A stretch of 64,000 bases of DNA from Utricularia gibba (Eukaryota; Plantae; Magnoliophyta): positions 372,001 to 436,000 of the forward strand of contig NEEC01000024.1 of assembly GCA_002189035.1 (NCBI GenBank), in the 5' to 3' direction. The translations under genes and the position numbers were made by a program. Below the pieces are notes generated by a model. The model saw nothing but the letters and a program-made list of their open reading frames with translations, was not told the DNA's origin and ran no database searches. Below, piece after piece: positions 1,415 to 24,169 of this stretch (its first letter is position 1; the number at the start of each line of letters is the position of its first letter).

Positions 1415-1805
1415 ATAGTGTATGCTGAAATTGTATTTCATGATTTGTGATAGGCATATTATATGATTTGCCATTGTTATATGTTTTGATTATGTGTCAT
1501 TATATTGCTGTTGTAAATTTTTAAATTGTTTGTATTATGTGATTGGTTTACGATGGATGATAATTATAATATAGGATGCTGTTATTATGTGGAAACTAAA
1601 TCAGGCAAAACCACGGGTGCTTATCACACCAGATAAAAAAACTGTTCACAAATCACTGAGTTTTGAATCACACGAGCAAAACAGCTCCAAGAAACAGGCT
1701 CAATCCAGCCAAACTTTTCCCTTAGGGCGCGTTTTATTGTTGGGTAAGGCCTAAACCCAGGTTTAGTTTATTTGGGTTTAGGTAATGATAACACATATTT
1801 TTGAG

Positions 1806-2937
1806 TGATTGAGTGCATGGAAATGACTCATATTGTGCTACAAAACTTAAGTTTTACTGCCTAGTTCTATATTTTTACACATAGTACCATAGTTGTGTTT
1901 TTTTAGTCTTAGTTGGGACTAAATTGATTTAGTTCCAACCTTACTTTTAATAGTTTTCTTTGAGTAATGCAGCACATGTCGGCAACACAAATCCCAAGGA
2001 ACCAAATATGTATAGTGTAGTAGCAGAGGATGAGGCAAAAGTTTGAAAAGAAGAACACAAAATCCAAGGAGAGGAAAAAGGAGGATTTTAGATAAAAAGG
2101 GGACAAGATGAAGAGAGAAAAAAGATCTCTCCATTGTGACATACGACATAGCTTTCTGAAGAAGTATTATGGGGGAAGAAGGAAGGGGACGATGAACCAG
2201 AAGAACAAGTTTCCCTTTTGAAGATTTTCTTTCGTTCTTGATGAGCATTATTCCTAGCTGAAACTAGTTTTAGTTTTCCCTACGTGAACAATTTACTGTT
2301 TATGCTCTGTTATGCATTTTGTGTTATTGTTTAACCTTGAGAACAAAATTTTGCTTAGAATATGTTATGGAAATGCTTTACTTTCCCTTGCTATGAGTGG
2401 CTAAGCACTTGGAGGGGTGCCTTGGGGCAAAAGGGGTGTAAAGTGTTAGTCAATCATTTGACCTTGTTAATCATAGATCACACCACTTCTTTATCAAACC
2501 AAGATAGATCCGGGAGGAGGAAGGAATGATATTCATCTTAAAAATCCTAATTAGAGGAAGACCAAAGATTAGGGGAAAAAAGGGTTTGGTAGACCTAAAC
2601 TCTTGCTTGTTAGACGTATGATTTGTGGTATATGTTAGGTTATTTTAGTGATAAACATGCAAGTCCTAGAAGTCCTAAGGCACACCCATCTCATTTAGGT
2701 ACAACCGAGTTTACAAGTTTGTCACTTTTCTTTGCTGTTTTTTAGCCAACTCTGTCTTAGTCCTAGTTAACACCAAATCTATCAATGTGACACTGATTGT
2801 ATGTATTAACTTTCACATAGCAAGCACCTAGCTCCTTGTGTTCAACCCTAGTCAACTATGCACATATTTTTCATATGATTTGATGTGAATTAGGTGTAAA
2901 AATTTTATTTGATAGGAAGATTTGCATATTAACGACA
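1806..2937 (+). mobile_element. Degenerate Athila-like solo LTR nested in the Harbinger left subterminal region
   Basis: Runs TGATTGAGTGC...AACGACA and interrupts the GGGTTT-rich subterminal tract. Contains Athila-LTR-like motifs ATGAGTGGCTAAG and CTCCTTGTGTTCAACCC. TSD is imperfect. Confidence 0.45.
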
Positions 2938-3396
2938 TTGCAAATTTTTTGTTTATTAGGTAAATGGATTTTATGGGTTTTGAAGATTATTCGTGTTTGG
3001 TTAATGGGTTTAAATTATTTGAGTTTAAGACTAATACACATTTGGTACGTGGGTATAAAATTGGGTTTCTGTTGAATTTTCATATGAAATTACCAATATA
3101 ACCTTCCCCAACAATAATTACTTCTTTTTATTACAATTTGTTTTCCCTTTCCTCCACCAACTTTCACACCCAGTTCATTGCGGTGCTGTCGCCTGACAAG
3201 ATCTCCATCGACTTCACCAGTAATTGAGGTTAAAAAGCCATGGGTTAACTCTAGATTGCATACCCCGTTCGTTGCGTAGAGTTTCTCACTTGAAATTCAT
3301 TGAATTTCGAGTCAATTTTATGGTTTACTTGTTCTACGTCCTCATTTTAGTTGCTTTGTTCTTGCTGTTTTCTTTCCTCCAGTACAAATTGAAGGC

Positions 3397-4343
3397 ATGC
3401 ATAGCCTAATCATGGTGGAAGACTCTCACAAAACTACAAAGCGCATCTGGAAGCCAGATGAGGAGAAGGACTTGGTGCATGCTCTGAAGCAGATAGTGAA
3501 AGAAGGCTGGAAAATTGAGAATGGTTTCAGGGGTGGGTATCATCGAGCATTAGAGACAGAGTTCTTGAACTTTGTCCAAGAACCGACATCCGCGCACACG
3601 CGCACATATCCAGCAAGATGCATACATGGAAAAAAGACTACTACCTCCTTGTACTCATGATGTTATATCCGGTGCTTGCCATGTTATTATGTCAGGATGC
3701 ACCCAAGCTGCGTGTCGTAAGATACAAAGTGTGGCCGTATTACATGGAGTTTTAGGAAATCGTTGGAAAGGATCAGGCTACAGGAGATAATATGATGAGC
3801 TATGTAGGTGCGACCAGGAAGAGGAAACTGATAGAAGATGTTGAGGTGAATCTGGATGCATCTTTGGATTGCCCTCGGGACCCTGATAGCACTGGACATG
3901 ATATGAACTTCTCGTATGCTAACACACCTTGTGACCCATTTGGTTGTGGTGCGGAGGGTGTGAACATCACACCTAGTAGGGACTCCGAGTCACACAATAG
4001 CACCGACTCCGCATGGAGGTCTAGACGAAGCGGGCGGGGACCAAGGGGAATCGATGATGATGCACAGTACCTCAAAGAAATGAAGGAGCTGAACATGTGC
4101 ACATGTGAGGAGCTATGTCACTTGGGATTAACAGTGGTGCAGCAAGCACGGGAGTTGGTGGACAATCAGTGTTAGGCAAGGGAGATCATTAGAGGTATAC
4201 CGCTGCAACTAACTGCCATCTAACATTTTACCATAGCAGAGATGATCAATTCCAACCATGCGAGGTTGCACTACTTCCTTTCCTTGAGTGACCGTGAAAG
4301 AGAGCTGATTGTGTGTGGTTTTGCATCCGAACATAGATCTTAA
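3397..4343 (+). pseudogene. Harbinger Myb/SANT-like DNA-binding ORF, frameshifted
   Basis: KRIWKPDEEKDLVHALKQIVKEGWKIENGFRGGY, then in a shifted frame RTDIRAHAHISSKMHTWKKDY. The C-terminal piece ...RLHYFLSLSDRERELIV... ends at TAA 4341-4343. Confidence 0.85.
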
Positions 4344-4811
4344 ATCTGTTGTGCGGTTTTTGGCATTATGCTGGACTCATGGGCTAGATGTATTTCCTCT
4401 TCTAATCATTTTTTAAGCAAATACATATTGTATTCCACGTGAAAATATAGGTGAAGGATGACTACATGTAACTGATATAAGCACTATGTAGGGTCGACAG
4501 TGTTCCGACCTCCCATTTGGAAGCACTACGTACGAACAAGCGCGGTGTTATGGTGTGAAGCACTACTCGATTAACGCAATGCTTCAAACAATGCCACATT
4601 CAGTGTGGTGCTACCAAGAAGTGATGCAACAACACAACATTGGTTTTGCCTATTACGAAGCACCACGTTTGGACATAGGGTTTAGTGGTTAGTGATGGCA
4701 CCGGATTTGAAAACATGCGGTGCTGCCACGATAGTTGTTTGATCAAATACTAACAAAGTTAGAATACCATAGTTCACGTCAGATCCATGCAAATTAAAGG
4801 TACATCATGTA

Positions 4812-6250
4812 TCACACAATAACCTTGTAATGCATCCACAATGGGTGTTCCTCGTCTGTCGGACATTGACCTACTCGTCGGCGATTGACATGCGTGGGTA
4901 CATCCATTACGTCAATGAGTACTTCTAGGAATGACCTAATATCACCCTCTCGAACTAGGGAGCAATCGTTGACCGTGGTGTACTTGAAGGTGGTTGGGAA
5001 TATGGCATTTTCAGGCGGTCCAATGAAAGTAAGTGATCATTAGGTGCAAGATGGTGGAGAATGAGGGTGATCCAAAAACTCACCGAGTTGTGTAGTGACT
5101 TGTACAGCACATCGTCGACCATTAGCGTATTAAGACAGTGATATTTGCCCTTGAACTCTGTGTTGGCGCTCCAAACATGGTTCAAAAGCTTCAACTTCGT
5201 GGTGTTGTTCCTGTTGTAGTGCAATTGTTCACTGAAACATGTCAAAAAAAACAACCATCAGCATCGTGCGGATCCCATTGTCTGCTAACTGGTCAATCTT
5301 ACCATCCTCTCGAAGACTAGATGGCGACGTCAAAGTGTTCCATGCAAAACTGTATCAACTCACGTGCACCTGGTCGAAGATACACTACAACAAATAGTAC
5401 CGACACATGCTACAAATATTAAATGCATATCAAATACAACACATTACCATTTCGCCCATAATAAACGGCATCCAGCTTCAGCGCTACCCACCTGACATCC
5501 TGAGGATACACAATGTCCGCAAGTACACCATTCACATCGAATATTATCAACATTCTTGGTGGGACTACAACGTTGCTCGACAGTCCACTATATGGCCATC
5601 TACCTTCATACCATGCAAGCCGTCCATAGAGTTCAAGATTCTCAACGTACTGTCTCTCTAGCTCAGCGTACTTTGCAGTGGCTGCACTGCACCCATCATC
5701 GCGTGTCGAGATCGGTGTTGGTCCATCACTTTTTCCCCCGCCTTCTAGCTGCGCATTTTCATCCTCTTCATACCATAGATGTTGTCTATGGTGTCGAGGG
5801 GTTCCATACTATAGATGTTGTGTTCTAGGGGCATTGACAAAGGGTGGCAAGACTTCCTCTAGTGACTTTGTTCTGCAAGAGAACAAATTCACAAACCTCT
5901 TTGCTGCACGCTTTTGCAATACCTCGATGCCTACAACAAGAACAACAAAAAGCATGACTTCTGTTGTAGACGAATTTATAATATTCGACATATTTGTATG
6001 TGATTACCTGATGGGTGTCCAACATTCCCTAGCACTATCAACGTTGTTGTCCATTCTGGAGCATTGGGTGCACATACACATACAAAACTAGTCCACCAAT
6101 CATCATCTGTGCTTCTCACATCTGTAACCAGAACCATGCCAGGTTTTCCATGAAGAGAATAGTGTGGACTCCCCTTACGTTGCACACACATGGAAACCGC
6201 AAAGAAGACATGCATTTCTGGAGGTATATCCTCCTCTTCACAGATCTGCA
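4812..6250 (-). pseudogene. Multi-exon FCP1/NIF-homology (HAD superfamily) phosphatase-like gene inside the Harbinger element
   Basis: Spliced translation: RMLIIFDVNGVLADIV | VYLRPGARELIQFCMEHFDVAI*SSR | ...NTLMVDDVLYKSLHNS | ENAIFPTTFK...GDIRSFLE...HPLWMHYKVIV*. GT-AG introns at 5385-5447, 5232-5302 and 5932-6007. In-frame TAG at 5317-5319 and near 5808. The 5' limit is uncertain. Confidence 0.75.
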
Positions 6251-6709
6251 GAAACGCGAGTACGAGCACCACAGAATGTGTGAGGTGCGAGAGTGGGATC
6301 CGGAGTACAGCAAGTATCTGCACCAAGAAAGGAGGCGGGGTCAGTTGCAATCCACACCAAAAGTGCTCAGTGCTGACGGTGAATCCTGATGCTCCAACTT
6401 TGGATGGCGGTTCGGAGTCGGATGTTTTGCCTGTTGTTTATCCCACATCACGTAACCGTCGGGTATTCAAAAGCGGGCACGTAGTTTGTCACACGTCAAC
6501 ATCTACAAAAAAAATAGAAATCTAACTAGATGAAAGAAAGGAAGAATCTAAAACGCTAATGCACTTGTTCCTACCGTCACGACATTGTTCCGATGAGGTT
6601 GTGAAGGAATCCCGTGTATGCGGTACCACTGCACATATGTCGAAAGGATGGAGGTGTAAGGGCATGATTAAATAAGTTGTTTTGGAAAGTGGGAAATGCG
6701 GTGCTCCTG

Positions 6710-6899
6710 TAAACATGCTTCGACAACCGATTTTTTTATGATGACTTAATATTCCTAAAAACATCCAAACTATCTCCAGAACCGTAACATATTTTCCAAC
6801 CTTTAAACTAGAACGATTTTCTAACAGGCTAAATAAAATACAAAAGACATCTCGGCTGATTCTCAAGTTCTCAATAGATGCGCTATTCACATCACTCAC
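6710..6899 (-). pseudogene. N-terminal stub of Harbinger transposase; no DDE core seen
   Basis: SDVNSASIENLRISRDVFCILFSLLENRSSLKVGKYVTVLEIVWMFLGILSHHKK matches the typical plant Harbinger transposase N-terminus (ENLRM.R..F..L..LL...V.V.E.V.MFL.IL.HHKK). Confidence 0.7.
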
Positions 6900-7539
6900 T
6901 AACCTACTAATATACTCAACTTGTTTAGGAATCTTGTCTATAAGGGAATTCTCACACTATATCCCCTACGGTAATTTTTACAATATAAGTATATTCACAC
7001 ATTCATCCCAACCAAGTATTCAGTTAATACTGCTGCAGCCACACTTAAGATGACATGACCCTCCATGGAAAAATCCATGTCCCCTCAACAATAGAAAAAA
7101 TCAAGCAAAATAAATCCACACAGCACCACTAATTTTGAAATTGGAAAATCACAGAACACACATACTATGCGGTGCTGCCGTGGACAAATTCACCAAGAAC
7201 AGAAAAGACACTTACCGGAAGACCCACCCTTTGCGGCCAAAGTGCTCGCGACGCCACTGGCAATTCACGAACCTAGCATTAGGTTTGTAGATCTGCATTC
7301 AAATGTGGATGACGTGGGGGTAAAATTGGAAGCCACGAGCCTTGTTTACCTAAATCGAGCACCCCTCATGGGTTTAGCTAAACACAGCTCGGCGGGTTCC
7401 TGCCAGGTATATAGGCACCTAGAGGGGTTTATTTTTACTTGTCTAAAACCCACGAACCAAACGTGGGTTTATGTCAAACCCACGCCACAACCCACCTAAA
7501 CCATTCAATCAAACGCACCCTTAAGAATAAGAAAACAGC

Positions 7540-9330
7540 AATGCACCAAGAATCGCTAGAAGTCAACTTGGATATGTTCTCTTTGCCTTCTCAGATCTAA
7601 ATGTATACCTAGATGAAAGCTTGTCTCTGCATTTGAGATGTTGCTCTCATTTTCTACGAAAAAACTTAATATAATGATCATACTCACTGGTCATATTTTA
7701 ATCTCTATTAGGTCTCTAACAAAGGGAACATAAGCTAGATTTAGGTTGCACTAATTTAGTCTTTAGCCCATGTAAATTGAGGATAACTGCAAGCCCAACA
7801 ATTTCCCGCATTCAGCTTATGTTTATCTCAATTTCTGACTTCCACCAATCCTAACCTGCTCATGTGAGACTGGTGTTTGACAAAGGACAACATTTTTGTA
7901 AGCACATCAGCAATTATTTCCAGATTGATAGCTCCACCTGAGATGATGTTTCGGATCCAATACTACGTAGTCAGAGTACACTATAGGCCTAGCTTTTAGG
8001 AAACTGAACTCATCCATGATTCTTCCAAGTCACAACACTTCCTTTACTATCTCTATTAATGTCATATACTCAACCTTGATAGTTGATAGAGCAAAAATTT
8101 TGTAGATGTGAGGTCTAGGTAACAGGAACTCCAACAACCATGTTGAGCATTCATGTTGTCAATTTTCTTGAGCCAATATGTTGTGCCATATCCGCATCTA
8201 TGTAAACTTGTGAGATGATGCTTCCCATACCGTAACTCAACTTGCATTATTTTGTGCCTTTGATATAATGCAATAGCCATTTCACACCATCCCAATGTTG
8301 CTTTCCAGGATTCTCCATGTACCTACTTATCACACTTATAGCACATGTTATATGCAGTCAAGTGCAAATCATCAAGTACATTAGGGAATCAACAATAGAA
8401 GAGTAAGATACCTTGCTCATCATCTCCCTTTCAATTTCTGTTTTTGGTGACATTTGGGAAGAAAATTTCAGATGTCCAAGGAGTGGTCCCAACACTGGTT
8501 TTGCTCCATCCATCTGAAATTTCTTCAAGACAAATTCAGTGTACTTATTTGGAGACAATGTTAAGGTCCTTTTGGTTCTGTCTCTTATTATGTCTAATCC
8601 AAAAATTTTCTTGGCTTCACCCAAGTCCTTTATCTCAAAAACAATAGCCATTTCTCTTTTTAGGTTTTGTAAGCATCTTATTTGGACTAGCTATTAGCAT
8701 ATCATCAACATATAATAGTAGAAAGATGCATTCAACATTTGATTTTTTCTTTTAGTAGGCGCAATGATCTCCTTCACATCTCTTAAATCCATAAGGGTAT
8801 TGAATTTATAATACCACTCATGAAGTGCTTGTTTAAGTCTATACAATCTTCCTCCAAGTCTAGACACAAGATCTTATTTTCCATGTTCTATAAATCCCTC
8901 AACTTGTTTCATATACAGTTCTTCATCGAGGTCCCCATGCAGATATGTCTCACTATTCAAGTTTTGAATCAAGGTGAGCCGTTAGGGACAACACAAGCCT
9001 TACTATATTCAACTTTATGATAGGTGAGAAGATTTCTTCATAATCTATGCCTTTCTTTCATCAATATCCCATCACTTCCACCATTGCTTTGTATCTAACA
9101 CTTCCATTTGGATTATGTTTCAACTTGAGTATCCATAAGTTTTCTAGAGGCTTCTTTCTAGTAGGTAGTTTCACAAGCTCATAGGTGCTGTTCTTTCTTA
9201 GAGATAAGCTTTCTTTACTGTCTGAGCTTCTCCCTCTTCTTTTATCAAGGCAATATCAAGCATATCTTCTCTAAATCAACAAGATATCTCGATGAAGGAA
9301 CATGTGGTCTTGATGATATTCAGATTTGGC
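7540..9330 (-). mobile_element. Ty1/Copia RT-RNase H remnant
   Basis: FEIKDLGEAKKIFGLDIIRDR...YSSIVDSLMYLMICT, followed by ENPGKQHWDG and an EHIQVD-like motif. Many stop codons. Confidence 0.85.
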
Positions 9331-12599: not shown

Positions 12600-13642
12600 T
12601 GCATTTTCACTCATTACTAATGGGAGTCTAACCATGGCTTGCCTAGAATAGATAAAAAGGGAATTGACTCTTTAAGATAGGAGATAGTTGATTTATCAAT
12701 AAAGGATTTATCATTCATGTTAGATATGAGATCTTATTTCAAGTAATTGTATCAAAGCCTAACAATAAGTCCTGGACCTAGAGTAATGACACTCAAAGAG
12801 TTTAAGTAGGTCATTGAGTGTTAGTGCTTAAATGCAATTATAAGTTTGATACATCATAAAGACACCCATCCATGTTGTGGTATCGAATGAGATATTAGTA
12901 TAATGAAAGTTGTTCATTGTGTGGTGGATGGTCATATAAAGGCTCAATCAGTTCACCTAATCATTCTTATATCTTACGGATCATGATATGTTGTTAGACA
13001 TCACTTATGATCGATAATGATGGATTTAATTAATTAAGATTGAATTGATATATTCATTATTATGTCCTTGATTAAAGAAGCATATAGGGTCACACACAAT
13101 AGTGGAGTCATTCATCAATATAAAATAGATTCACACAATTACATGAGATGTAATTGGTAAAGTGGATAAATTAAATACAGAGTTATTTTGAGATTAATAT
13201 TGATTAAACTCAAAATAAAAGATCTAATATAGATAAGATTTGGAATATATATATCTCCACGACATACAATCTTTACAGAGATTTTATTAGATATGTTACC
13301 AAATATCTATATAAGATAATGAGAAAGATTTATCCGTAGGGATTTTCATATCTTCATTCTCTTTGAGATTTATTCACAAGGGGTGATTTTCTCTACTAGC
13401 ACCTGAAGAAAACGACCATCATTCTATGACCGTGAGGAGGTTATTGATGAAGTGCTTAACATATGGGTACCATAGAGGCCGTATGCTGTTGGCGAGTGGT
13501 GAATAAAGAAGTGTACTTAAAGGTATTTTCAGAATCGCTTTATCAGATATATACCATATTTCAAGATTTGCAATTTGGGTTTCTCAAAAAAATTCAAATT
13601 CCACTGCATTGAGAACATACAATGTCTATGGGAAACCTTACG
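12600..13642 (+). mobile_element. Angela-like Copia LTR, 3' two-thirds, inverted relative to 11965-12598
   Basis: Colinear with 37870-37960 and 55555-56415. Ends GGGAAACCTTACG, compared with GAGAAACCCAACA. Confidence 0.8.
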
Positions 13643-13975
13643 ATTCTCGTGCCTCCTTGTCAATCAAAGTGTAAAGAAGAGTAGACTATTTCTTGCTTCT
13701 ATAATCAGTTTTTCGGAAGGAATCTGTAAAAGTCAATTCAAGGATAAACAAAAAGTAAAAATGAAATATCTTTTCCAGGAATTGCTTCCCTTAGACAAGG
13801 TCCATTACTTACGTTATATCATTTATTCTTGTATTTCCAAAACCCCTTTTAAAATCCCGTGACAATTTTTAAAAGTTTAGTTCAAAATGCTTTTCGTAAA
13901 ACTCAGCTCTCTGAGATTAATACTCATACTACGCTTATTTTTGTTCCATGTTTTTCTAAATTAAAATTTGTATTT
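13643..13975 (+). mobile_element. Athila-type LTR subfamily 1, 3' part
   Basis: Similar to 42550-42880 (CGTGCCTCCTTGTCAATC...). Confidence 0.7.
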
Positions 13976-17359: not shown

Positions 17360-18544
17360 CGATAGATGCCACATGGAAAAAATCATAAGAAGGCTACATA
17401 AATCGGTCAAAGGATTGGATATCAAATCGGTTCTCACTAGACGAGATCGGTATGGGAGCATGAAACAAATTCTGACAACCTATAATAGACGTGTAGGCTA
17501 GTAGGGATCGGAATAGGATAGTGACAACTATTTCAACAGAGATTGAAAAGTAACTAATTTATAACAACCCTAGAGTAGGCGATAGTTACATGTCAACAAG
17601 ACCACAAGTGTGGCCGACATAACTGCCGAGTGCAAACATTAACTAACATTCTTAGAAACTAGTTGGCCAAGCATCTCCTATAAATAGGAGAATGTTTGGA
17701 GATAAATCCTTTTAAAATACCTCCTCCTCATTTTAGTGAAATCCATTTCTCTAATGAGTTCCCCCAGTTTCGTGATTTTTCATCTCAACGGTTTTGATGG
17801 AGCATAAAATTGGCAAGTGCCATGTGGAGGCGAAAAGAGAAGATATTGATAAATCAACGAACTGGGAGGATAACGTAATCGGTTCTTCTTGGATGAAATC
17901 AGCTAGGAAAAGGTCTAAGATGTGTTCTTACAGTCTATCGTAGACCCACAGACTAATAAGTGTAAGAATTGGACTATAGTAACTATTTTGACAATCTGAA
18001 AAGTAGCCAAAGTGTAGGTGTGTTAGGGCAGTCGGTGGTTACCTGTTAGTAGGACCATATGTATGGTTACCAAGCGTAGAAAGTAGTTGACACCTGCAAA
18101 ATTCGGTCCGATCGGCCCCTTCTATAAATATGAGGAAGTTTGAGGAAACAAGGGGTTGAACTCTATACATTTGATTTATACCTTTTTCTCCTCTTACATC
18201 AGTGAAATCTACTTTTTTTATGAACTCTGACAATTTCATAGTTTTTTTGTCTCAGTGATTTCCATGTAAAAAACTCTTGTCTCTCCTTTTTCATATTTCG
18301 CATAAATCGGTCAGCTCACAACCAACGTAGACCGTTATCATATCTGCATTCACAACTCGAAATCGTTTCCCTTCATAGTGCTGATTTCTAACCACAATAG
18401 GTTTGCACATAAAAGTCTGCAACCCTTCTTTATTGCATTACACACTATTACTAATCGGATTCCAACATCATTAAATCGAACACCCGTTATCGATCTAACA
18501 CTCAAAAATCAAACTTCTACATTGATTTGATTTTCACCTACAAC
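17360..18544 (+). mobile_element. Two consecutive Tat/Retand-type LTR-like units
   Basis: Each unit has a CTATAAATA box (near 17680 and 18125). The first unit resembles 39580-39830. The second ends ...CACCTACAACA at 18544. Confidence 0.45.
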
Positions 18545-19542
18545 ATACATTTTAAAAAATAATAAAATAATTTCAAATCAACTTGCTATTCTAATATTTT
18601 AATACATGTTTGATACATCAAACCTATAATATTTTTGTGATACATGCAATATAAGATATAATTAAATTTATAATTATGATTATAATTAACAAAATCTCTT
18701 GGATGCAATGTGGAGTTTACTCTACAAGGGCCTTGTTTGAGTTTTCCAAATTCCTGAAACTCAGCTATTGCTCACGCTGCCCGAAACCCTTTTCTAAACG
18801 ATCCCTCGTCTACATGGACGCGCTTCATGGAACTGGGGACACCCAGGTGAAGGCACTTCTCGATTCTGTTTTCTCGCATGGGGCATTTTTCTCTGGTACT
18901 GATACGCTTCTTTTTATTTGGCAAGAGTTGTGAATTTGGAGGGGAAGCTCTTCGGTTTTGTGCAAAATCCTTCATTTTGCCCTAATATGATGCCGCCTAT
19001 GCTTAAATGTGTTTGTCTTGATTTTCTGCTTCTACTAAGTCGTTGTTGTACCTCATCCCGTGTTGTTATCGGGTCTGCTTGTCGGGTCAGAACGCAAGGA
19101 TGGACTGGTTTTTGTATGACCTGCAGGATATGCGTATCTGCTTGAGTACATTTTCATTTACTTTACGAGTTCCTAATCTATTGGAATAGACTTTGCTTTA
19201 CTAATACTGATGCATAAAAATTTTAAGTGCCCCTCTTACTAAATTAATTTGAGGCTCTTGGAAAACATTCGGCCGAGGGTGTCCTTATGTTTTGTTTTGG
19301 GTCTAAGGCGCTTGTATCCTTTGATCTCGAAGTAGAAGCAAAGTATATCAAGCCGTTTTCCAGAAGGGTGTGGGATACCTGTCTATCTGTTTGAGTAATG
19401 CTTTTCTCGTTTTGTTTAAGAAAATTGATCGCTTCAAATTCTGTTCTTATCTTCATTTAGGAATGTAACCTGCCAATGCTGGGTAGCGAGGACACTTTGT
19501 AGCTCAAAAAGGGAAATCTTTCTCGTTCGTATCAATGCTACC

Positions 19543-22137
19543 ATGAATAGTCCACGAAGTGATACCGCATGCAATTTTGAAGCATATGCAAGACCAGTTG
19601 TTGCTGCAGCTTGGAGGTAGCACTGAGTCTCCTTGCATATCCTTTTTCACTTTGAACTTTCTCTGTTCTGTATAATGAAAAATGGAGATTTATAACAAGT
19701 GATGCTTGTTCGTAAGGAATATTCCTAACAACTTCTGGTTATCATGAGTAGGGCCAGGTTCAAGATTCCCAGTCAGAACCTAAATGAAGTAAGGGTGACT
19801 GCTCATGTCTTTGACACAGCATCCTTGAAAGTCTTGGATGTAGCAAACATGCAATCTGAGTCACTATACCTTGAAATTTTTCCACGCAGTAATGTGTGGC
19901 CTACTTCTTTTAAGAGTTCTCCACCATCTGATCATGATATTGCCCTAATTTTCTTTTCAAGCGGAAGGTACCCTGCTGACTGTTGTGCTTCCGTTCTTCC
20001 TTCCATTAGCAGTCATACTGTGTTCGCTTTCAGGGATGAAGAAATTCTTGACAGCCTGCTGAAGCATGCTATCAGTGCTGACCTTGCTCTTAAGGGAGAG
20101 GTTGCTGAATCTGAGCTCTTGATATTTACTTCAGTTCATTTGCCTGATAAGGCTCGCCGTAAGTCTGGGTTCTGATGACATGGAGTTATCTGCTTCTTCT
20201 CTATCATTTAGTCGTTTTTTGTTATTTTTTAATCACCAGGATTTCAGGGAAAACTGTATTTCTGGGGTTTTTTCATGGGGCATGGATGCACCTCCAGTCA
20301 TGATACGGATAACCATGTCCAACTCCTGTCTTCCAGAACTAGGCAGATTTTATCTCCAGATCCCGGGAGACTTAGCTTTGTGACAGTGGGAAGTTCATTT
20401 ATTTCCTCCAGAGAACATAATCAGTGTATGCCCTTCAAAAATAGTGCTCGTTATTATACCTCATGCCTTTTTTCTTTAGTCACTTTTCTACGTGTATCGT
20501 AAATTGGACATCCATATACGGGCTGTTACATCAGACTTCCAATGTTATGATACTTCTGTTGTCCATCTATCACTTGTCTAAAATCTAGCATTCAATAGGT
20601 TTACTTTCTTCGCTGGTTTTCTACAGACCATCACTTGGCTTATCCTTTTGATGTTCTTTCCTTTCCCTCTGGGTAACGGATTTCAGTAGCAGATCCTGAA
20701 AAATCTGAAAGAAGAGGGAGACGCCTAGATGCTGCATGGGAACATGCCAGACCGTTAGACGCTCTAAGGCAGAAATCAGAGTGCAAGTATTGTGGTTTCT
20801 TCTCATCTCATGGTGGTATTTCACGACTCAAGGCACATTTGGGGGGAGGAGACCCGAGAATTCACTTACCTGGATGCACCAATGTGCCTCCACAAATTAA
20901 GAAAGTCATGGCTGAGTGGTTCATCAATTGGGTGAGGGCAACAAAGGCAGTATGGACTAAGGAAATCAGAGGTACACCTCGTCTGTAATATTTGAATTGC
21001 AACGTCCTATATGACCCATTCTAATTTCACCTTTATATTGCTTGTACATGCATGCTGTTTCATCCTTTCAACTTTTCTTTTTTCTCTTTGTTCTTCAAAA
21101 TGGAACAGAAACACTTTCTTATGGAGGAGGAATTCAGCATGATGCTCCATGGGGACCCTCCAAGCCTTTCGGTGATGCAGGAGTGAAGAGAGATGATGAG
21201 CATCTCGACTTTGGTTTCTTACAAAGCCATGCTTCAAACCATCATGCAAATACAGTTTGTGACTCAAAGGTGGCAGTAAAATCTTGGCCTAAGTCATCTC
21301 CTGAGACTAGTTCCATATCCACGAAAGCAAGAAAGACGAGGACTTGTGCTTCTGATCACCAAAAAGGAGTTGTAGCTGCTGTGAAAATTTCACGGGGTAT
21401 ATATATATATATTGAGTGATCTATCGATTGTAGTTGCAACTTTCCTGATATTCAGTTTGGGATTGCATGCGATGGCAGATGGTTCACAAGAAGAGAGAAG
21501 AGGAAGGCCGCTTGATGATGCTTGGAACCATGCGAAGCCGTTGGATGAGGCTAGGCAAAAGACACAATGCAGGTACTGCGGCTTTATTTCTTCATATGGA
21601 GGAATATCCCGGTTGAAGGCGCATCTTGGTGGAGGGTCTCCTCATATACAGCTTCTAGGTTGCCCCGGGCCCCCGTCGAAGTCAAAAGTGCCATGGGGCA
21701 TTGGTTCAATGACTGGTCAAAACATTCAAATGCATGTTGGGCTAGGAAGCATCCAGGTGCGTGTGTTCCTCCATCAAGTGTATGTTTTCTTCATACCAAG
21801 TAACAGTGCCTCGATTAAGCTGCCACCAGGTGGTTATACTGGTTCTGCACCTTTTGATAAAAGAGCAAGCACAGTGGAGGATGAAGCATGGGAACACGGG
21901 ATTCCTGTGGATGAAACCGGGCAAGCAATCAAATGCAGGCACTGTGGTTTTGTTTCTAAGCGTGGAGGAATTGCAAGACTGCGAGTCCACTTGAGTGGAG
22001 GTGATCGCACGATGCAGTTGGAAGGTTGCCCCGATGTGCCGCCGGAAGTGAGGTTATCCATGGGTGAGCAAGAACCGAAAAAACGGAAGAAGAAATCAAC
22101 ATCTGTTGAGTGCAGTGATGTGCATTTTACGGGGTGA
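19543..22137 (+). CDS. AIPP2-like SPOC domain plus three BED zinc fingers and a C-terminal NLS, about 586 aa predicted, with a 1-bp frameshift in exon 7
   Basis: Predicted exons: 19543-19616, 19752-19967, 20034-20158, 20240-20425, 20687-20971, 21109-21396, 21479-21756, 21830-22137. All introns are GT-AG and phase-compatible. SPOC motifs: ARPVVAAAWR, LEIFPRSNVWP, PSDHDIALIFF, DLALKGEVAESELLIFTSVHLP, RFQGKLYFWGFF. Three C-x2-C-x14-H-x12-C fingers. PKKRKKK near the C-terminus. The start codon and upstream exons are uncertain. Confidence 0.75.
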
Positions 22138-22521
22138 GATCGAAGCACCCGCCCCGACAGACTGACCTTGTATTCTGAGTGAATTGCCGCCTGGGTGTTT
22201 CGTTGACCCGTAAATTGTAAAAATAGTAACATTATTTGGCGAACCCTAAATAAGCAGAAGGCTTCAGGGCACCCATTCTATTAGTTCAAGAATCATCTTT
22301 ATCTACCACGCAACTCCACTCCACTCCACGGATTGATTATAAGTGCCCTAGAAATGAAGGACGCCAAGTCAAGTGCTGGTGGCTCCCCTCTCCCGTCCCC
22401 TCAACAACTGGGCCCCAGTAACATTAATGTGCCAGCCGCTCAACCGTACAGACAAGGAAAATATATATGCATATCGTATACACAAGATAAGAAGCTCCCG
22501 GTCCCCATCCCACTCCCAAGA

Positions 22522-22545
22522 GAAGAAGAAGAAGAAGAAGAAGAA
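22522..22545. repeat. (GAA)8 microsatellite in the VQ gene 3' region
   Basis: Eight perfect GAA units, counted directly. Confidence 0.95.
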
Positions 22546-22562
22546 ACAACTAAGTAGTCGGC

Positions 22563-23257
22563 TTACAATTCAAAGAGGCTGCGTATGAGATTGAGAGTGG
22601 ATGGAGAGTAGATGCTGAGTTGGGGTGAGAGGAGGAAAGAAGAAGCGCTGGGGCTTTGGAAGGCGTTGACGTTGTAGTTGTTCACATCTTCAGACTGATT
22701 CTGATTCCTTGCGCTTTGCAATAATGGACTAAAGTCGAAGAAGCTTGAGTCTGTTGCAGGTGAGAAAATGCTTCTTGGTATTGGTGGAAGTGAATGGGGA
22801 TTCGGAGAAAGAATTCCTGGGAACTGGCTGCTCCCTATCTGAACATCGGAACCAATCTCTATCCCTTCCAGTTGGAAAACACACTCTGAATCATGATCCA
22901 AAACTTGTTCAGAGGTCCTTGTTTTCTCGATCGATGCATAACGCGTTGCCGGAGAAACACCGCCACCGTCGATCTGGAAATCGAATGAGGAAGACCGACA
23001 CGCCTGCTGGGTGGATTGAGGAATGGCGGTAGAGGAGGAGCCCTGCCCCGTCAAGCGCTGAACTAGAGACATGAACTCATCGGGTTGCGCGTGAATGATT
23101 TTTGGAGAGACTGTGTATATGATGACGGGGGGCGGGGCTGCGCCAACGGAGGCTTTTTGATCTTGTGGGAATCCTTGCTCACTTTCAAGGGAGTCGGGCG
23201 TGGCCCGAGAAGCTCACGTTTTGGCGACCGGGCTGATGGATTTTCCGGGAAGTTCAT
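22563..23257 (-). CDS. VQ motif-containing protein, MKS1/VQ21-like clade, about 231 aa, with a 1-bp frameshift
   Basis: MNFPENPSARSPKRELLGPRPTPLKVSKDSHKIKKPPLAQPRP / VIIYTVSPKIIHAQPDEFMSLVQRLTG... contains the FxxxVQxLTG motif. The frame switches in the G-run at 23127-23137. The span is 695 nt, one short of 696. Confidence 0.9.
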
Positions 23258-24169
23258 CGGAGAAGAAGATTGATTATCTCCTTGGAATTGGTTGGTTGAA
23301 ATGGAAGACGAGCAGAAAATGATAAATGTATCAGCGAAGGAAGTCAATGAAGTATGAAAGATGAAATGCACACCAATGAATATATACGTGTGCGTACTCG
23401 TCTTTGAATTCGTCAAACAAAGGGGGTTGCCTTGCCGGTGCAGTTATAAAGCGAAACCCGGTTCACAGTGATTTCAGAGGAGGACCGAGGGATGCGCTGT
23501 TTGTTCGTCACCGGGGACAGGGGACTGGTCAACAGCGGGAATTGGGGTTCCGACGCTACTCACAATTCATGATAATATATTGTGGAGATGATCCACCCAT
23601 CACCATCATTCTGCTTCTGAAATTGCACTGACTCGGTTCTGAAATGGTTTTCGCCGATGAACCGGTCTCCACCAACACGCGTTGACACGCTTTATGTCGA
23701 TTTGAGCTGGCCCAAATTTTTCCCAACCACCCATCGCAAAATAAGACGGAGGAGGAAGAATGGCGTCAAGTCTGAGCAGATATGAGCGGGAAGCTTGAGT
23801 TCTAAAATCCGCCCCATTGGTCTCCCGGGAAACACAGAAACGCAAACAACAGCATGTTGATTGTGGTTTTGTTTGCGTCTATGCATCCAGACACAAAGCC
23901 CAAGGGTGCTAGTTCTTGTTGCTGCGCACGATGTCATGCATTGGATGCATGGTGGGCTTGTCATACTTGGTGTTGTGATAAGTGGAGAAACTACATACAA
24001 TTCATTCTCTAATTCTTGGGGCTCTAACGTGAGGAGTGTAAATTGCTCAATAGAAGATACTTGTGAAGAAACAGAATCGTGAATAAGATGTTATTTTGGG
24101 TTATTACCCATTGCAATATTTACATAAGATTGTTCCTTTTATAGACAAGGATTTAATGACTGTCCACTA

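Follow-up and report, generated by a model that had tools for sequence, protein, structure and literature searches.

A transcribed gene of Utricularia gibba that joins an AIPP2-type SPOC-like domain to BED fingers

The locus and its transcripts

The window, a stretch of 64,000 nucleotides from contig NEEC01000024.1 of Utricularia gibba (positions 372,001 to 436,000), carries on its plus strand a gene with eight coding exons located exactly at 19543-22137, which sum to 1760 nt as assembled and to 1761 nt with one added base. Spliced and repaired, the coding sequence of 1761 nt has no internal stop and specifies a protein of 586 residues, in which a SPOC-like domain is followed by a low-complexity linker, a first BED finger, a BED remnant, a second and a third BED finger, and a basic NLS. 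The features of the locus, including a 5' UTR exon that the earlier note did not see, are these:

18737..18846, plus strand: 5' UTR exon, defined by RNA contig joints and spliced onto 19461
19461..19616, plus strand: start-codon exon, with the ATG at 19543, defined by RNA joints
19752-19967, 20034-20158 and 20240-20425, plus strand: exons 2-4, AIPP2-type SPOC-like domain and start of the linker; introns confirmed by RNA
20687..20971, plus strand: exon 5, BED finger 1 with its C2HC ligands intact; zf-BED at 27.6 bits
21109..21396, plus strand: exon 6, linker and decayed remnant of a fourth BED-like unit; no Pfam match
21479..21756, plus strand: exon 7, BED finger 2; zf-BED at 34.5 bits; one C missing from the assembly
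21830..22137, plus strand: exon 8, BED finger 3; zf-BED at 28.4 bits; basic stretch; stop codon at 22135-22137
22075-22095, plus strand: NLS-like basic stretch PKKRKKK, within exon 8
22138..22492, plus strand: 3' UTR, from RNA contigs colinear beyond the stop codon

The structure of the gene is documented by RNA contigs from four runs belonging to two studies (X1, X2, X3 and X5), which were placed on 18000-23500. The RNA runs come from the same organism, and 0.53-0.66 of the sampled window words were present in them, as against an exonic share of 0.68. Each of the four runs shows GT..AG joints for all seven predicted introns, and the eight-exon model of the earlier note, 1761 nt long after a +1 repair, is therefore confirmed with exact splice signals. 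Single contigs (record 3 of X2 and record 5 of X3) span the gene from exon 1 to exon 8, and the SPOC and BED exons consequently form one mRNA; the earlier note had claimed a single transcript and named two separate loci as the outcome that would overturn it, and the junction check went in favour of the claim. At the 5' end the contigs show joints from 18844 to 19459 (X2, X3) and from 18894 to 19460 (X3, X5), the 5' UTR exon having an alternative donor near 18894, and in the isoform that ends at 18846 an in-frame ATG further upstream would, on translation, add about 33 residues. Exon 1, coding at 19543-19616, supplies the first 24 residues and the beginning of the W-R-x-x-F motif of the SPOC domain, and the N-terminus of the window protein aligns with the N-termini of the Buddleja and Castilleja homologues. 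Neither sequence scans nor the transcripts from 18737 revealed a PHD or other coding exon upstream, and an Rfam scan of the window gave no match. At its other end, the 3' UTR extends into the 3' end of a minus-strand VQ-motif gene that is oriented towards it.

The assembly presents one apparent defect, a 1-nt frame break in exon 7, where the run at 21663-21666 is without one C. The RNA contigs, which are the sole source for this base, all carry an extra C behind 21662 that restores the frame, and they do so in four runs out of four, X5 included, which represents a different genotype with SNPs. With the extra C in place the end of exon 7 reads ...WFNDW...KHPG and is homologous to the end of finger 1 in exon 5. 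In the neighbouring gene, at 23126, the contigs again have one base more than the assembly. Since the extra C recurs in every RNA run, the frameshift in finger 2 is most likely a homopolymer error of the assembly and not gene decay, and the +1 repair was correctly anticipated; it is possible, instead, that the assembled plant carries a private null allele at 21662.

The SPOC-like domain and the BED fingers

Pfam scans were run on exon-wise translations. The open frame 19744-20172, which consists of exons 2 and 3 read through the short in-frame intron between them, matches the family SPOC_AIPP2 (PF23121) with an E-value of 1.6e-23 and 83.8 bits (cutoff 28.1), while the scan of exons 4 and 6 produced no match. 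The fold was approached through an AlphaFold2 model of the first 170 residues of the Sesamum orthologue, built on a 90-sequence alignment and standing in for the domain of the window protein; its mean pLDDT was 89.3. The best Foldseek matches of this model in the PDB are the SPOC domains of SPOCD1 (8ou1), PHF3 (6ic8 and 6q2v) and RBM15 (7z27), that of SHARP being matched lower in the list, and the MED25 ACID and the Ku barrel are also matched, as expected for the fold class, with SPOC domains placed above MED25 ACID. The family thus has its beta-barrel in common with PHF3, SPOCD1, SHARP/SPEN and RBM15 (Foldseek probability 1.00, TM 0.54-0.64), at a sequence identity to the Sesamum model of just 13-18%; the AIPP2 type, for its part, is not known to bind phosphopeptides. 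Both the Pfam match and the fold of the orthologue bear out the AIPP2-like SPOC motifs reported in the earlier note. SPOC readers of the PHF3 and SPEN type hold phosphoserine in basic patches. Six columns (R25, K50, R69, K116, R138 and K142), counted in the alignment and not superposed on the PHF3 patches, are basic in 88-99% of 90 AIPP2-type sequences, and the window protein keeps all of them. Within the AIPP2 type, AIPP2 and PAIPP2 themselves are more distant from the SPOC domain of the family than small PHD-SPOC proteins are.

The profile zf-BED (PF02892) scores above its cutoff of 20.6 bits on exons 5, 7 and 8. In an alignment of 46 finger units the W, C, C and H positions never vary and the fourth ligand, C, hardly does; all zinc ligands are intact in the three window fingers, each of which pairs with the same-numbered finger of the other species. 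The earlier note had described three fingers of one common pattern, and the three fingers themselves hold, all above threshold, but the pattern is too strict at its end, where finger 2 has GCPRAPVEV and not GC..VPP. The PKKRKKK stretch that it proposed as an NLS was located at 22075-22095, and a basic cluster follows finger 3 at the matching place in the orthologues.

The fingers had also been called hAT-type, the N-terminal kind of plant hAT transposases. In the ESM Atlas exon 5 groups with zf-BED_2 clusters, one of which has among its structural neighbours plant proteins with DUF659 and Dimer_Tnp_hAT, and a BED finger of related type occurs in DAYSLEEPER, RICESLEEPER and the plant DUF659-hAT proteins. 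These resemblances agree with the label as a lead; an alignment-based link did not emerge. A word-based region search with the BED part of the Castilleja protein P0003 returned family members alone and no hAT relative, a PDB sequence search with finger 1 gave no match, the finger model found only weak BED matches in a fold search of AlphaFold Swiss-Prot (E 0.07-1), and structural matches of the fingers to domesticated hAT proteins were likewise weak (E 0.2-1). In contrast to DAYSLEEPER and RICESLEEPER, neither the window gene nor any family member scanned contains a transposase core, DUF659 or a hAT dimerisation domain, and the fingers sit after the SPOC domain, not N-terminal as in the hAT or SLEEPER type. 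Around the gene, between 16500 and 25000, a search for terminal inverted repeats yielded nothing beyond chance pairs that are short and poorly complementary. The Atlas features and the structure make it plausible, as a lead, that the fingers come from hAT transposases, but the further suggestion that the protein is directed to transposon-like DNA found no support, the studied tomato member binding instead to E4/E8 promoter regions.

Family membership and ancestry

When 1.84 billion representatives were searched in full by HMMER with the SPOC part, 277 matched at E ≤ 0.001, and among the best 150 of these a BED motif is present in just three:

P0001: Buddleja alternifolia, 765 aa, BED-bearing SPOC match
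P0003: Castilleja foliolosa, 660 aa, BED-bearing SPOC match
P0006: Solanum pennellii, 461 aa, BED-bearing SPOC match; cluster of n=54

All three have an N-terminal SPOC_AIPP2 domain and then 2-3 zf-BED matches. The P0006 cluster includes tomato E4/E8 binding protein-1 (NP_001233912, O24423, AAB67671), in which SPOC_AIPP2 occupies residues 11-139 and zf-BED content is present as in the window protein; the two are 42% identical over the SPOC domain and finger 1 (E 2e-67). With P0003 and a family profile as queries, this grew to about 40 clusters that pair PF23121 with PF02892 or PF26664 (zf-BED_2). These fusion clusters belong exclusively to Lamiales or Solanaceae within a collection that is length-filtered and incompletely sampled, and in Lamiales they cover Orobanchaceae, Paulowniaceae, Pedaliaceae, Lamiaceae, Phrymaceae, Acanthaceae, Bignoniaceae, Gesneriaceae and Scrophulariaceae. 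Below them the score falls sharply to SPOC-only eudicot proteins, including those of Ipomoea, Coffea, Cinchona and Abeliophyllum (Oleaceae).

PMC7461821 presents tobacco 3AF1 and tomato E4/E8-BP1 as BED-domain DNA-binding proteins, after Aravind 2000, and gives Coupe & Deikman 1997 (PMID 9225464) as the only work to show a plant BED protein binding DNA. The tomato protein was cloned in 1997 as a DNA-binding protein and is reported to bind promoter regions of E4 and E8, which are ripening genes. The name '3AF1' was sought in the Nicotiana cluster and is absent from it, so that the connection with 3AF1 is the one drawn in PMC7461821 and no other. The earlier note had taken the architecture to be uncharacterised, and this has to be withdrawn, as some 40 clusters share it, tomato E4/E8BP-1 among them; its own proviso, that the architecture might prove common and already described, turned out to be partly true, through those clusters and through the treatment of E4/E8BP-1 in PMC7461821. 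Judged by sequence, the window gene ranks as an orthologue within a known family restricted to lamiids, and its architecture is not new. Tomato E4/E8BP-1 and the homologues in Lamiales and Solanaceae resemble the window protein in that SPOC_AIPP2 stands at the N-terminus with C2HC fingers of the zf-BED_2 type behind it. In Solanaceae, however, the fingers number two, against three in the window protein, and the C-terminus differs, while the core-Lamiales proteins end in a conserved tail that is missing from the window gene.

Proteins of Sesamum, Paulownia, Handroanthus and Castilleja are 47-53% identical to the window protein and colinear with it over about 570 residues, and a maximum-likelihood tree places it within the core-Lamiales clade with support of 97/99. 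Its terminal branch is long, 0.78 against a median of 0.11, in a protein collection that holds no near relative and from which the window protein itself is apparently missing. The exons match those of the Paulownia gene (L001) one by one. This includes the region of exon 6, which aligns with a partly degenerate BED exon of Paulownia (L001 15114-15338) whose BED unit is still recognisable. The deposited Paulownia protein skips part of finger 1, and dN/dS was for this reason computed by the Nei-Gojobori method on exon-wise tblastn alignments. Over 383 codons the ratio is 0.27 (0.34 for the SPOC domain and 0.22 for the BED fingers), and because dS is 0.94 and near saturation it is a rough value. 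Purifying selection has acted on the window gene. The conserved C-terminal tail of the Lamiales proteins was sought in the window and is absent, the transcripts running straight to the stop at 22137, and the long branch together with this missing tail means that the role of the protein may have changed or weakened.

Finger-by-finger orthology across Lamiales indicates that the fusion is old and vertically inherited. Beyond the gene itself there is no synteny with Paulownia within the stretches compared. In Paulownia the fusion gene adjoins a SPOC-only paralogue, and locus tags suggest an adjacent SPOC-only paralogue also in Sesamum latifolium (Slati_2303800 and Slati_2303900) and in Erythranthe; none was found in the window. 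These adjacent paralogues hint that the recipient of the fingers was a tandem copy of an AIPP2-like gene.

Proposed function and alternative readings

In proposing a function, we need to account for a DNA-binding array and a beta-barrel of the AIPP2 type within one protein. We put at roughly three in four the probability that the locus is an intact, transcribed nuclear gene for a nuclear protein of the E4/E8BP-1 family, in which the BED fingers bind DNA and the SPOC-like domain docks a partner of the Pol II CTD. The C2HC fingers would bind specific DNA sites, by analogy with the report on tomato E4/E8BP-1, and the SPOC-like beta-barrel would form the effector end, most likely docking a partner from the CTD machinery, on the model of AIPP2 and PAIPP2, whose C-termini contain the SPOC domain and bind the Ser5 phosphatase CPL2. 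At the promoters so bound, the protein would tune or repress transcription, and the proposal leaves the sign of the effect either way.

The comparison with the BAH-PHD-CPL2 complex of Arabidopsis is informative in both its likenesses and its differences. AIPP2/PHD3 and PAIPP2/PHD2 have PF23121 in common with the window protein, their C-termini are fully responsible for binding CPL2, and the C-terminus of CPL2 that bears the RBM is required for binding AIPP2 and PAIPP2 (PMC7718874); later work extended the CPL2-PHD2/3 module to CHH methylation of transposons and to LHP1 (PMC12663933). The AIPP2 papers locate CPL2 binding in 'the C terminus' without narrowing it to the SPOC-like domain. AIPP2 and PAIPP2 are brought to chromatin by AIPP3 and by a PHD finger that recognises unmethylated H3K4, and they carry the SPOC-like domain at the C-terminus, whereas the window protein has no PHD, an N-terminal SPOC-like domain, and a targeting that would run from BED finger to DNA sequence. 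The PHD finger of AIPP2 and PAIPP2 comes with a polybasic region and binds AIPP3 and H3K4me0; no exon of the window gene gave a PHD match, and the family members scanned are also without PHD. By analogy with these proteins, the SPOC barrel may recruit CPL2 or make contact with the Pol II CTD. Elsewhere in the window, at 1725-7520, where an FCP1-like gene had been proposed, a DxDxT phosphatase motif was sought and not found.

A bolder version of this proposal, which we regard as speculative and on balance unlikely, would make the lamiid E4/E8BP-1/3AF1 factors natural 'zinc finger-SPOC' tethers, in which hAT-derived fingers, acquired beside a tandem AIPP2-like copy, pick the promoters and the SPOC domain recruits CPL2 or reads the phosphorylated CTD. 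There is a precedent of a kind in synthetic constructs, since zinc-finger-CPL2 fusions tethered to promoters lower Ser5P and silence their target genes (PMC10027610), and the natural protein would achieve the same site-specific Ser5 dephosphorylation and silencing if its SPOC domain recruits CPL2; the likeness would be an indirect one, the synthetic fusions using designed C2H2 fingers and the window protein BED fingers. Were the tether reading true, there would be a DNA-sequence-guided branch of BAH-PHD-CPL2 silencing, and the action of E4/E8BP-1 and 3AF1 would be explained. E4/E8BP-1 and its relatives have for decades been cited merely as DNA-binders with BED fingers, yet the N-terminal half is an AIPP2-type SPOC domain, which suggests a link to CPL2 or the Pol II CTD and which has apparently gone undiscussed. 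We found no paper linking AIPP2-type SPOC domains to BED fingers or to E4/E8BP, and the word SPOC is not applied to AIPP2 in PMC4380257, PMC7718874, PMC12663933, PMC10027610 or PMC7461821. What is gained is a hypothesis that ties sequence-specific promoter binding to recruitment of a Pol II CTD phosphatase.

The strongest rival casts the protein as an activator of transcription or a co-activator adaptor, its SPOC domain acting like the ACID of MED25 or docking an activating partner and having no link to repression of the CPL2 type. A review-type, secondary statement that E4/E8BP is a positive regulator of ripening and binds sequences of the E8 promoter (PMC4380257) speaks for an activator, as does the presence of MED25 ACID structures among the top fold matches of the Sesamum model, but the SPOC domains rank above MED25 ACID in that same search, the Pfam family is that of AIPP2, and the studied relatives of the AIPP2 domain act in silencing (PMC7718874, PMC12663933); we consider an activator improbable, though deserving of serious attention.

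Much further down is a decaying pseudogene, in which the frameshift of finger 2 would be real and the locus a transcribed relic. The frame break at 21662-21666 in the assembly as given would suit such a relic, as would the long terminal branch, the lost C-terminal tail and the BED unit already decayed in exon 6. However, the extra C in all the RNA contigs of four runs, the other genotype X5 included, contradicts a real frameshift, and the indel at 23126 in the adjoining gene points toward homopolymer errors of the assembly; the other 586 codons are open over 7 introns, with the zinc ligands preserved and a dN/dS of 0.27, all of which makes a relic very unlikely. Least credible of all, and close to dismissal, is the idea that this is no host gene but a piece of a mobile hAT element or a chimera formed by recent transposase capture, for although the zf-BED_2 type is also present in plant proteins with DUF659 and hAT-dimerisation domains and the window is rich in transposon remains, neither gene nor family has a transposase, DUF659 or hAT dimerisation domain, no terminal inverted repeats flank the gene, the Paulownia exon structure is identical and the fingers are orthologous one by one over Lamiales.

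The base dropped in exon 7 of the assembly has a practical consequence, in that automatic annotation may have broken the gene.

One-base deletions and the convergent VQ-motif gene

Downstream of the SPOC-BED gene lies a convergent gene, and a microsatellite occupies the 3' region that the two share:

22563-23416, (-), single-exon VQ-motif gene, convergent to the SPOC-BED gene, with the VQ motif FMSLVQRLTG and a Pfam VQ match
22520-22545, (GAA)n microsatellite between the two convergent genes

The assembly breaks the VQ-motif gene into two open reading frames (23416-23063 and 23072-22563), and the Pfam VQ match (E 0.002) was scored on this cut frame. All RNA contigs carry an extra G behind 23126, which would join the two frames. 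Compared with the transcripts, the assembly has two one-base deletions less than 1.5 kb apart, at 21662 (in exon 7 of the SPOC-BED gene) and at 23126, each within a homopolymer run. Where other parts of this assembly show an apparent frameshift, it needs to be checked against reads before a pseudogene label is applied. The 3' UTR of the SPOC-BED gene meets the 3' end of the VQ-motif gene, and assemblers fused transcripts of both into one contig; 22493-22558 was left out of read placement as a repeat.

In Paulownia, the alignment of BED finger 1 of the orthologous gene falls in two overlapping frames (13607-13938 of stretch L001), and the deposited protein P0168 omits part of this finger (…CRYCGFAHLGGG…), an anomaly that reflects either a further assembly indel or an annotation error.

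Transcript variants of the SPOC-BED gene

The isoform with the 18846->19461 splice contains an upstream in-frame ATG (MELGTPR…; 18823-18846 and 19461-19542), which, as read from the sequence, would lengthen the protein by about 33 residues; this N-terminal extension shows no conservation among homologues, and the ATG is absent from the alternative 5' isoform. A minor alternative GT..AG joint within exon 2 (19788-19890), present in a single contig of run X5, skips 101 nt and would disrupt the SPOC frame.

Genomic surroundings and origin of the fusion gene

A phosphatase gene of the FCP1-like kind, to which CPL2 belongs, would be an unusual neighbour for an AIPP2-type gene. In 1725-7520, none of the six reading frames contains a DxDxT catalytic motif, and two long open reading frames have no Pfam match. 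Upstream of the SPOC-BED gene, sequence likeness indicates retrotransposon remains:

8358-8651, (-), open reading frame with Ty1/copia-type reverse-transcriptase-like sequence (…KDLGEAKKIFGLDIIRDR…)

The window contains no SPOC_AIPP2-only neighbour of the SPOC-BED gene. Such a gene is found in Paulownia fortunei, directly downstream of the orthologue:

L001 20519-26169, SPOC_AIPP2-only gene, Pfo_021302

Because a SPOC_AIPP2-only gene adjoins the SPOC-BED gene in Paulownia and, judging by locus tags, elsewhere, the arrangement suggests that the fusion gene arose via tandem duplication. For Sesamum latifolium, the locus tags Slati_2303800 and Slati_2303900 suggest the same SPOC-only/SPOC-BED arrangement, and those of Erythranthe point to several copies.
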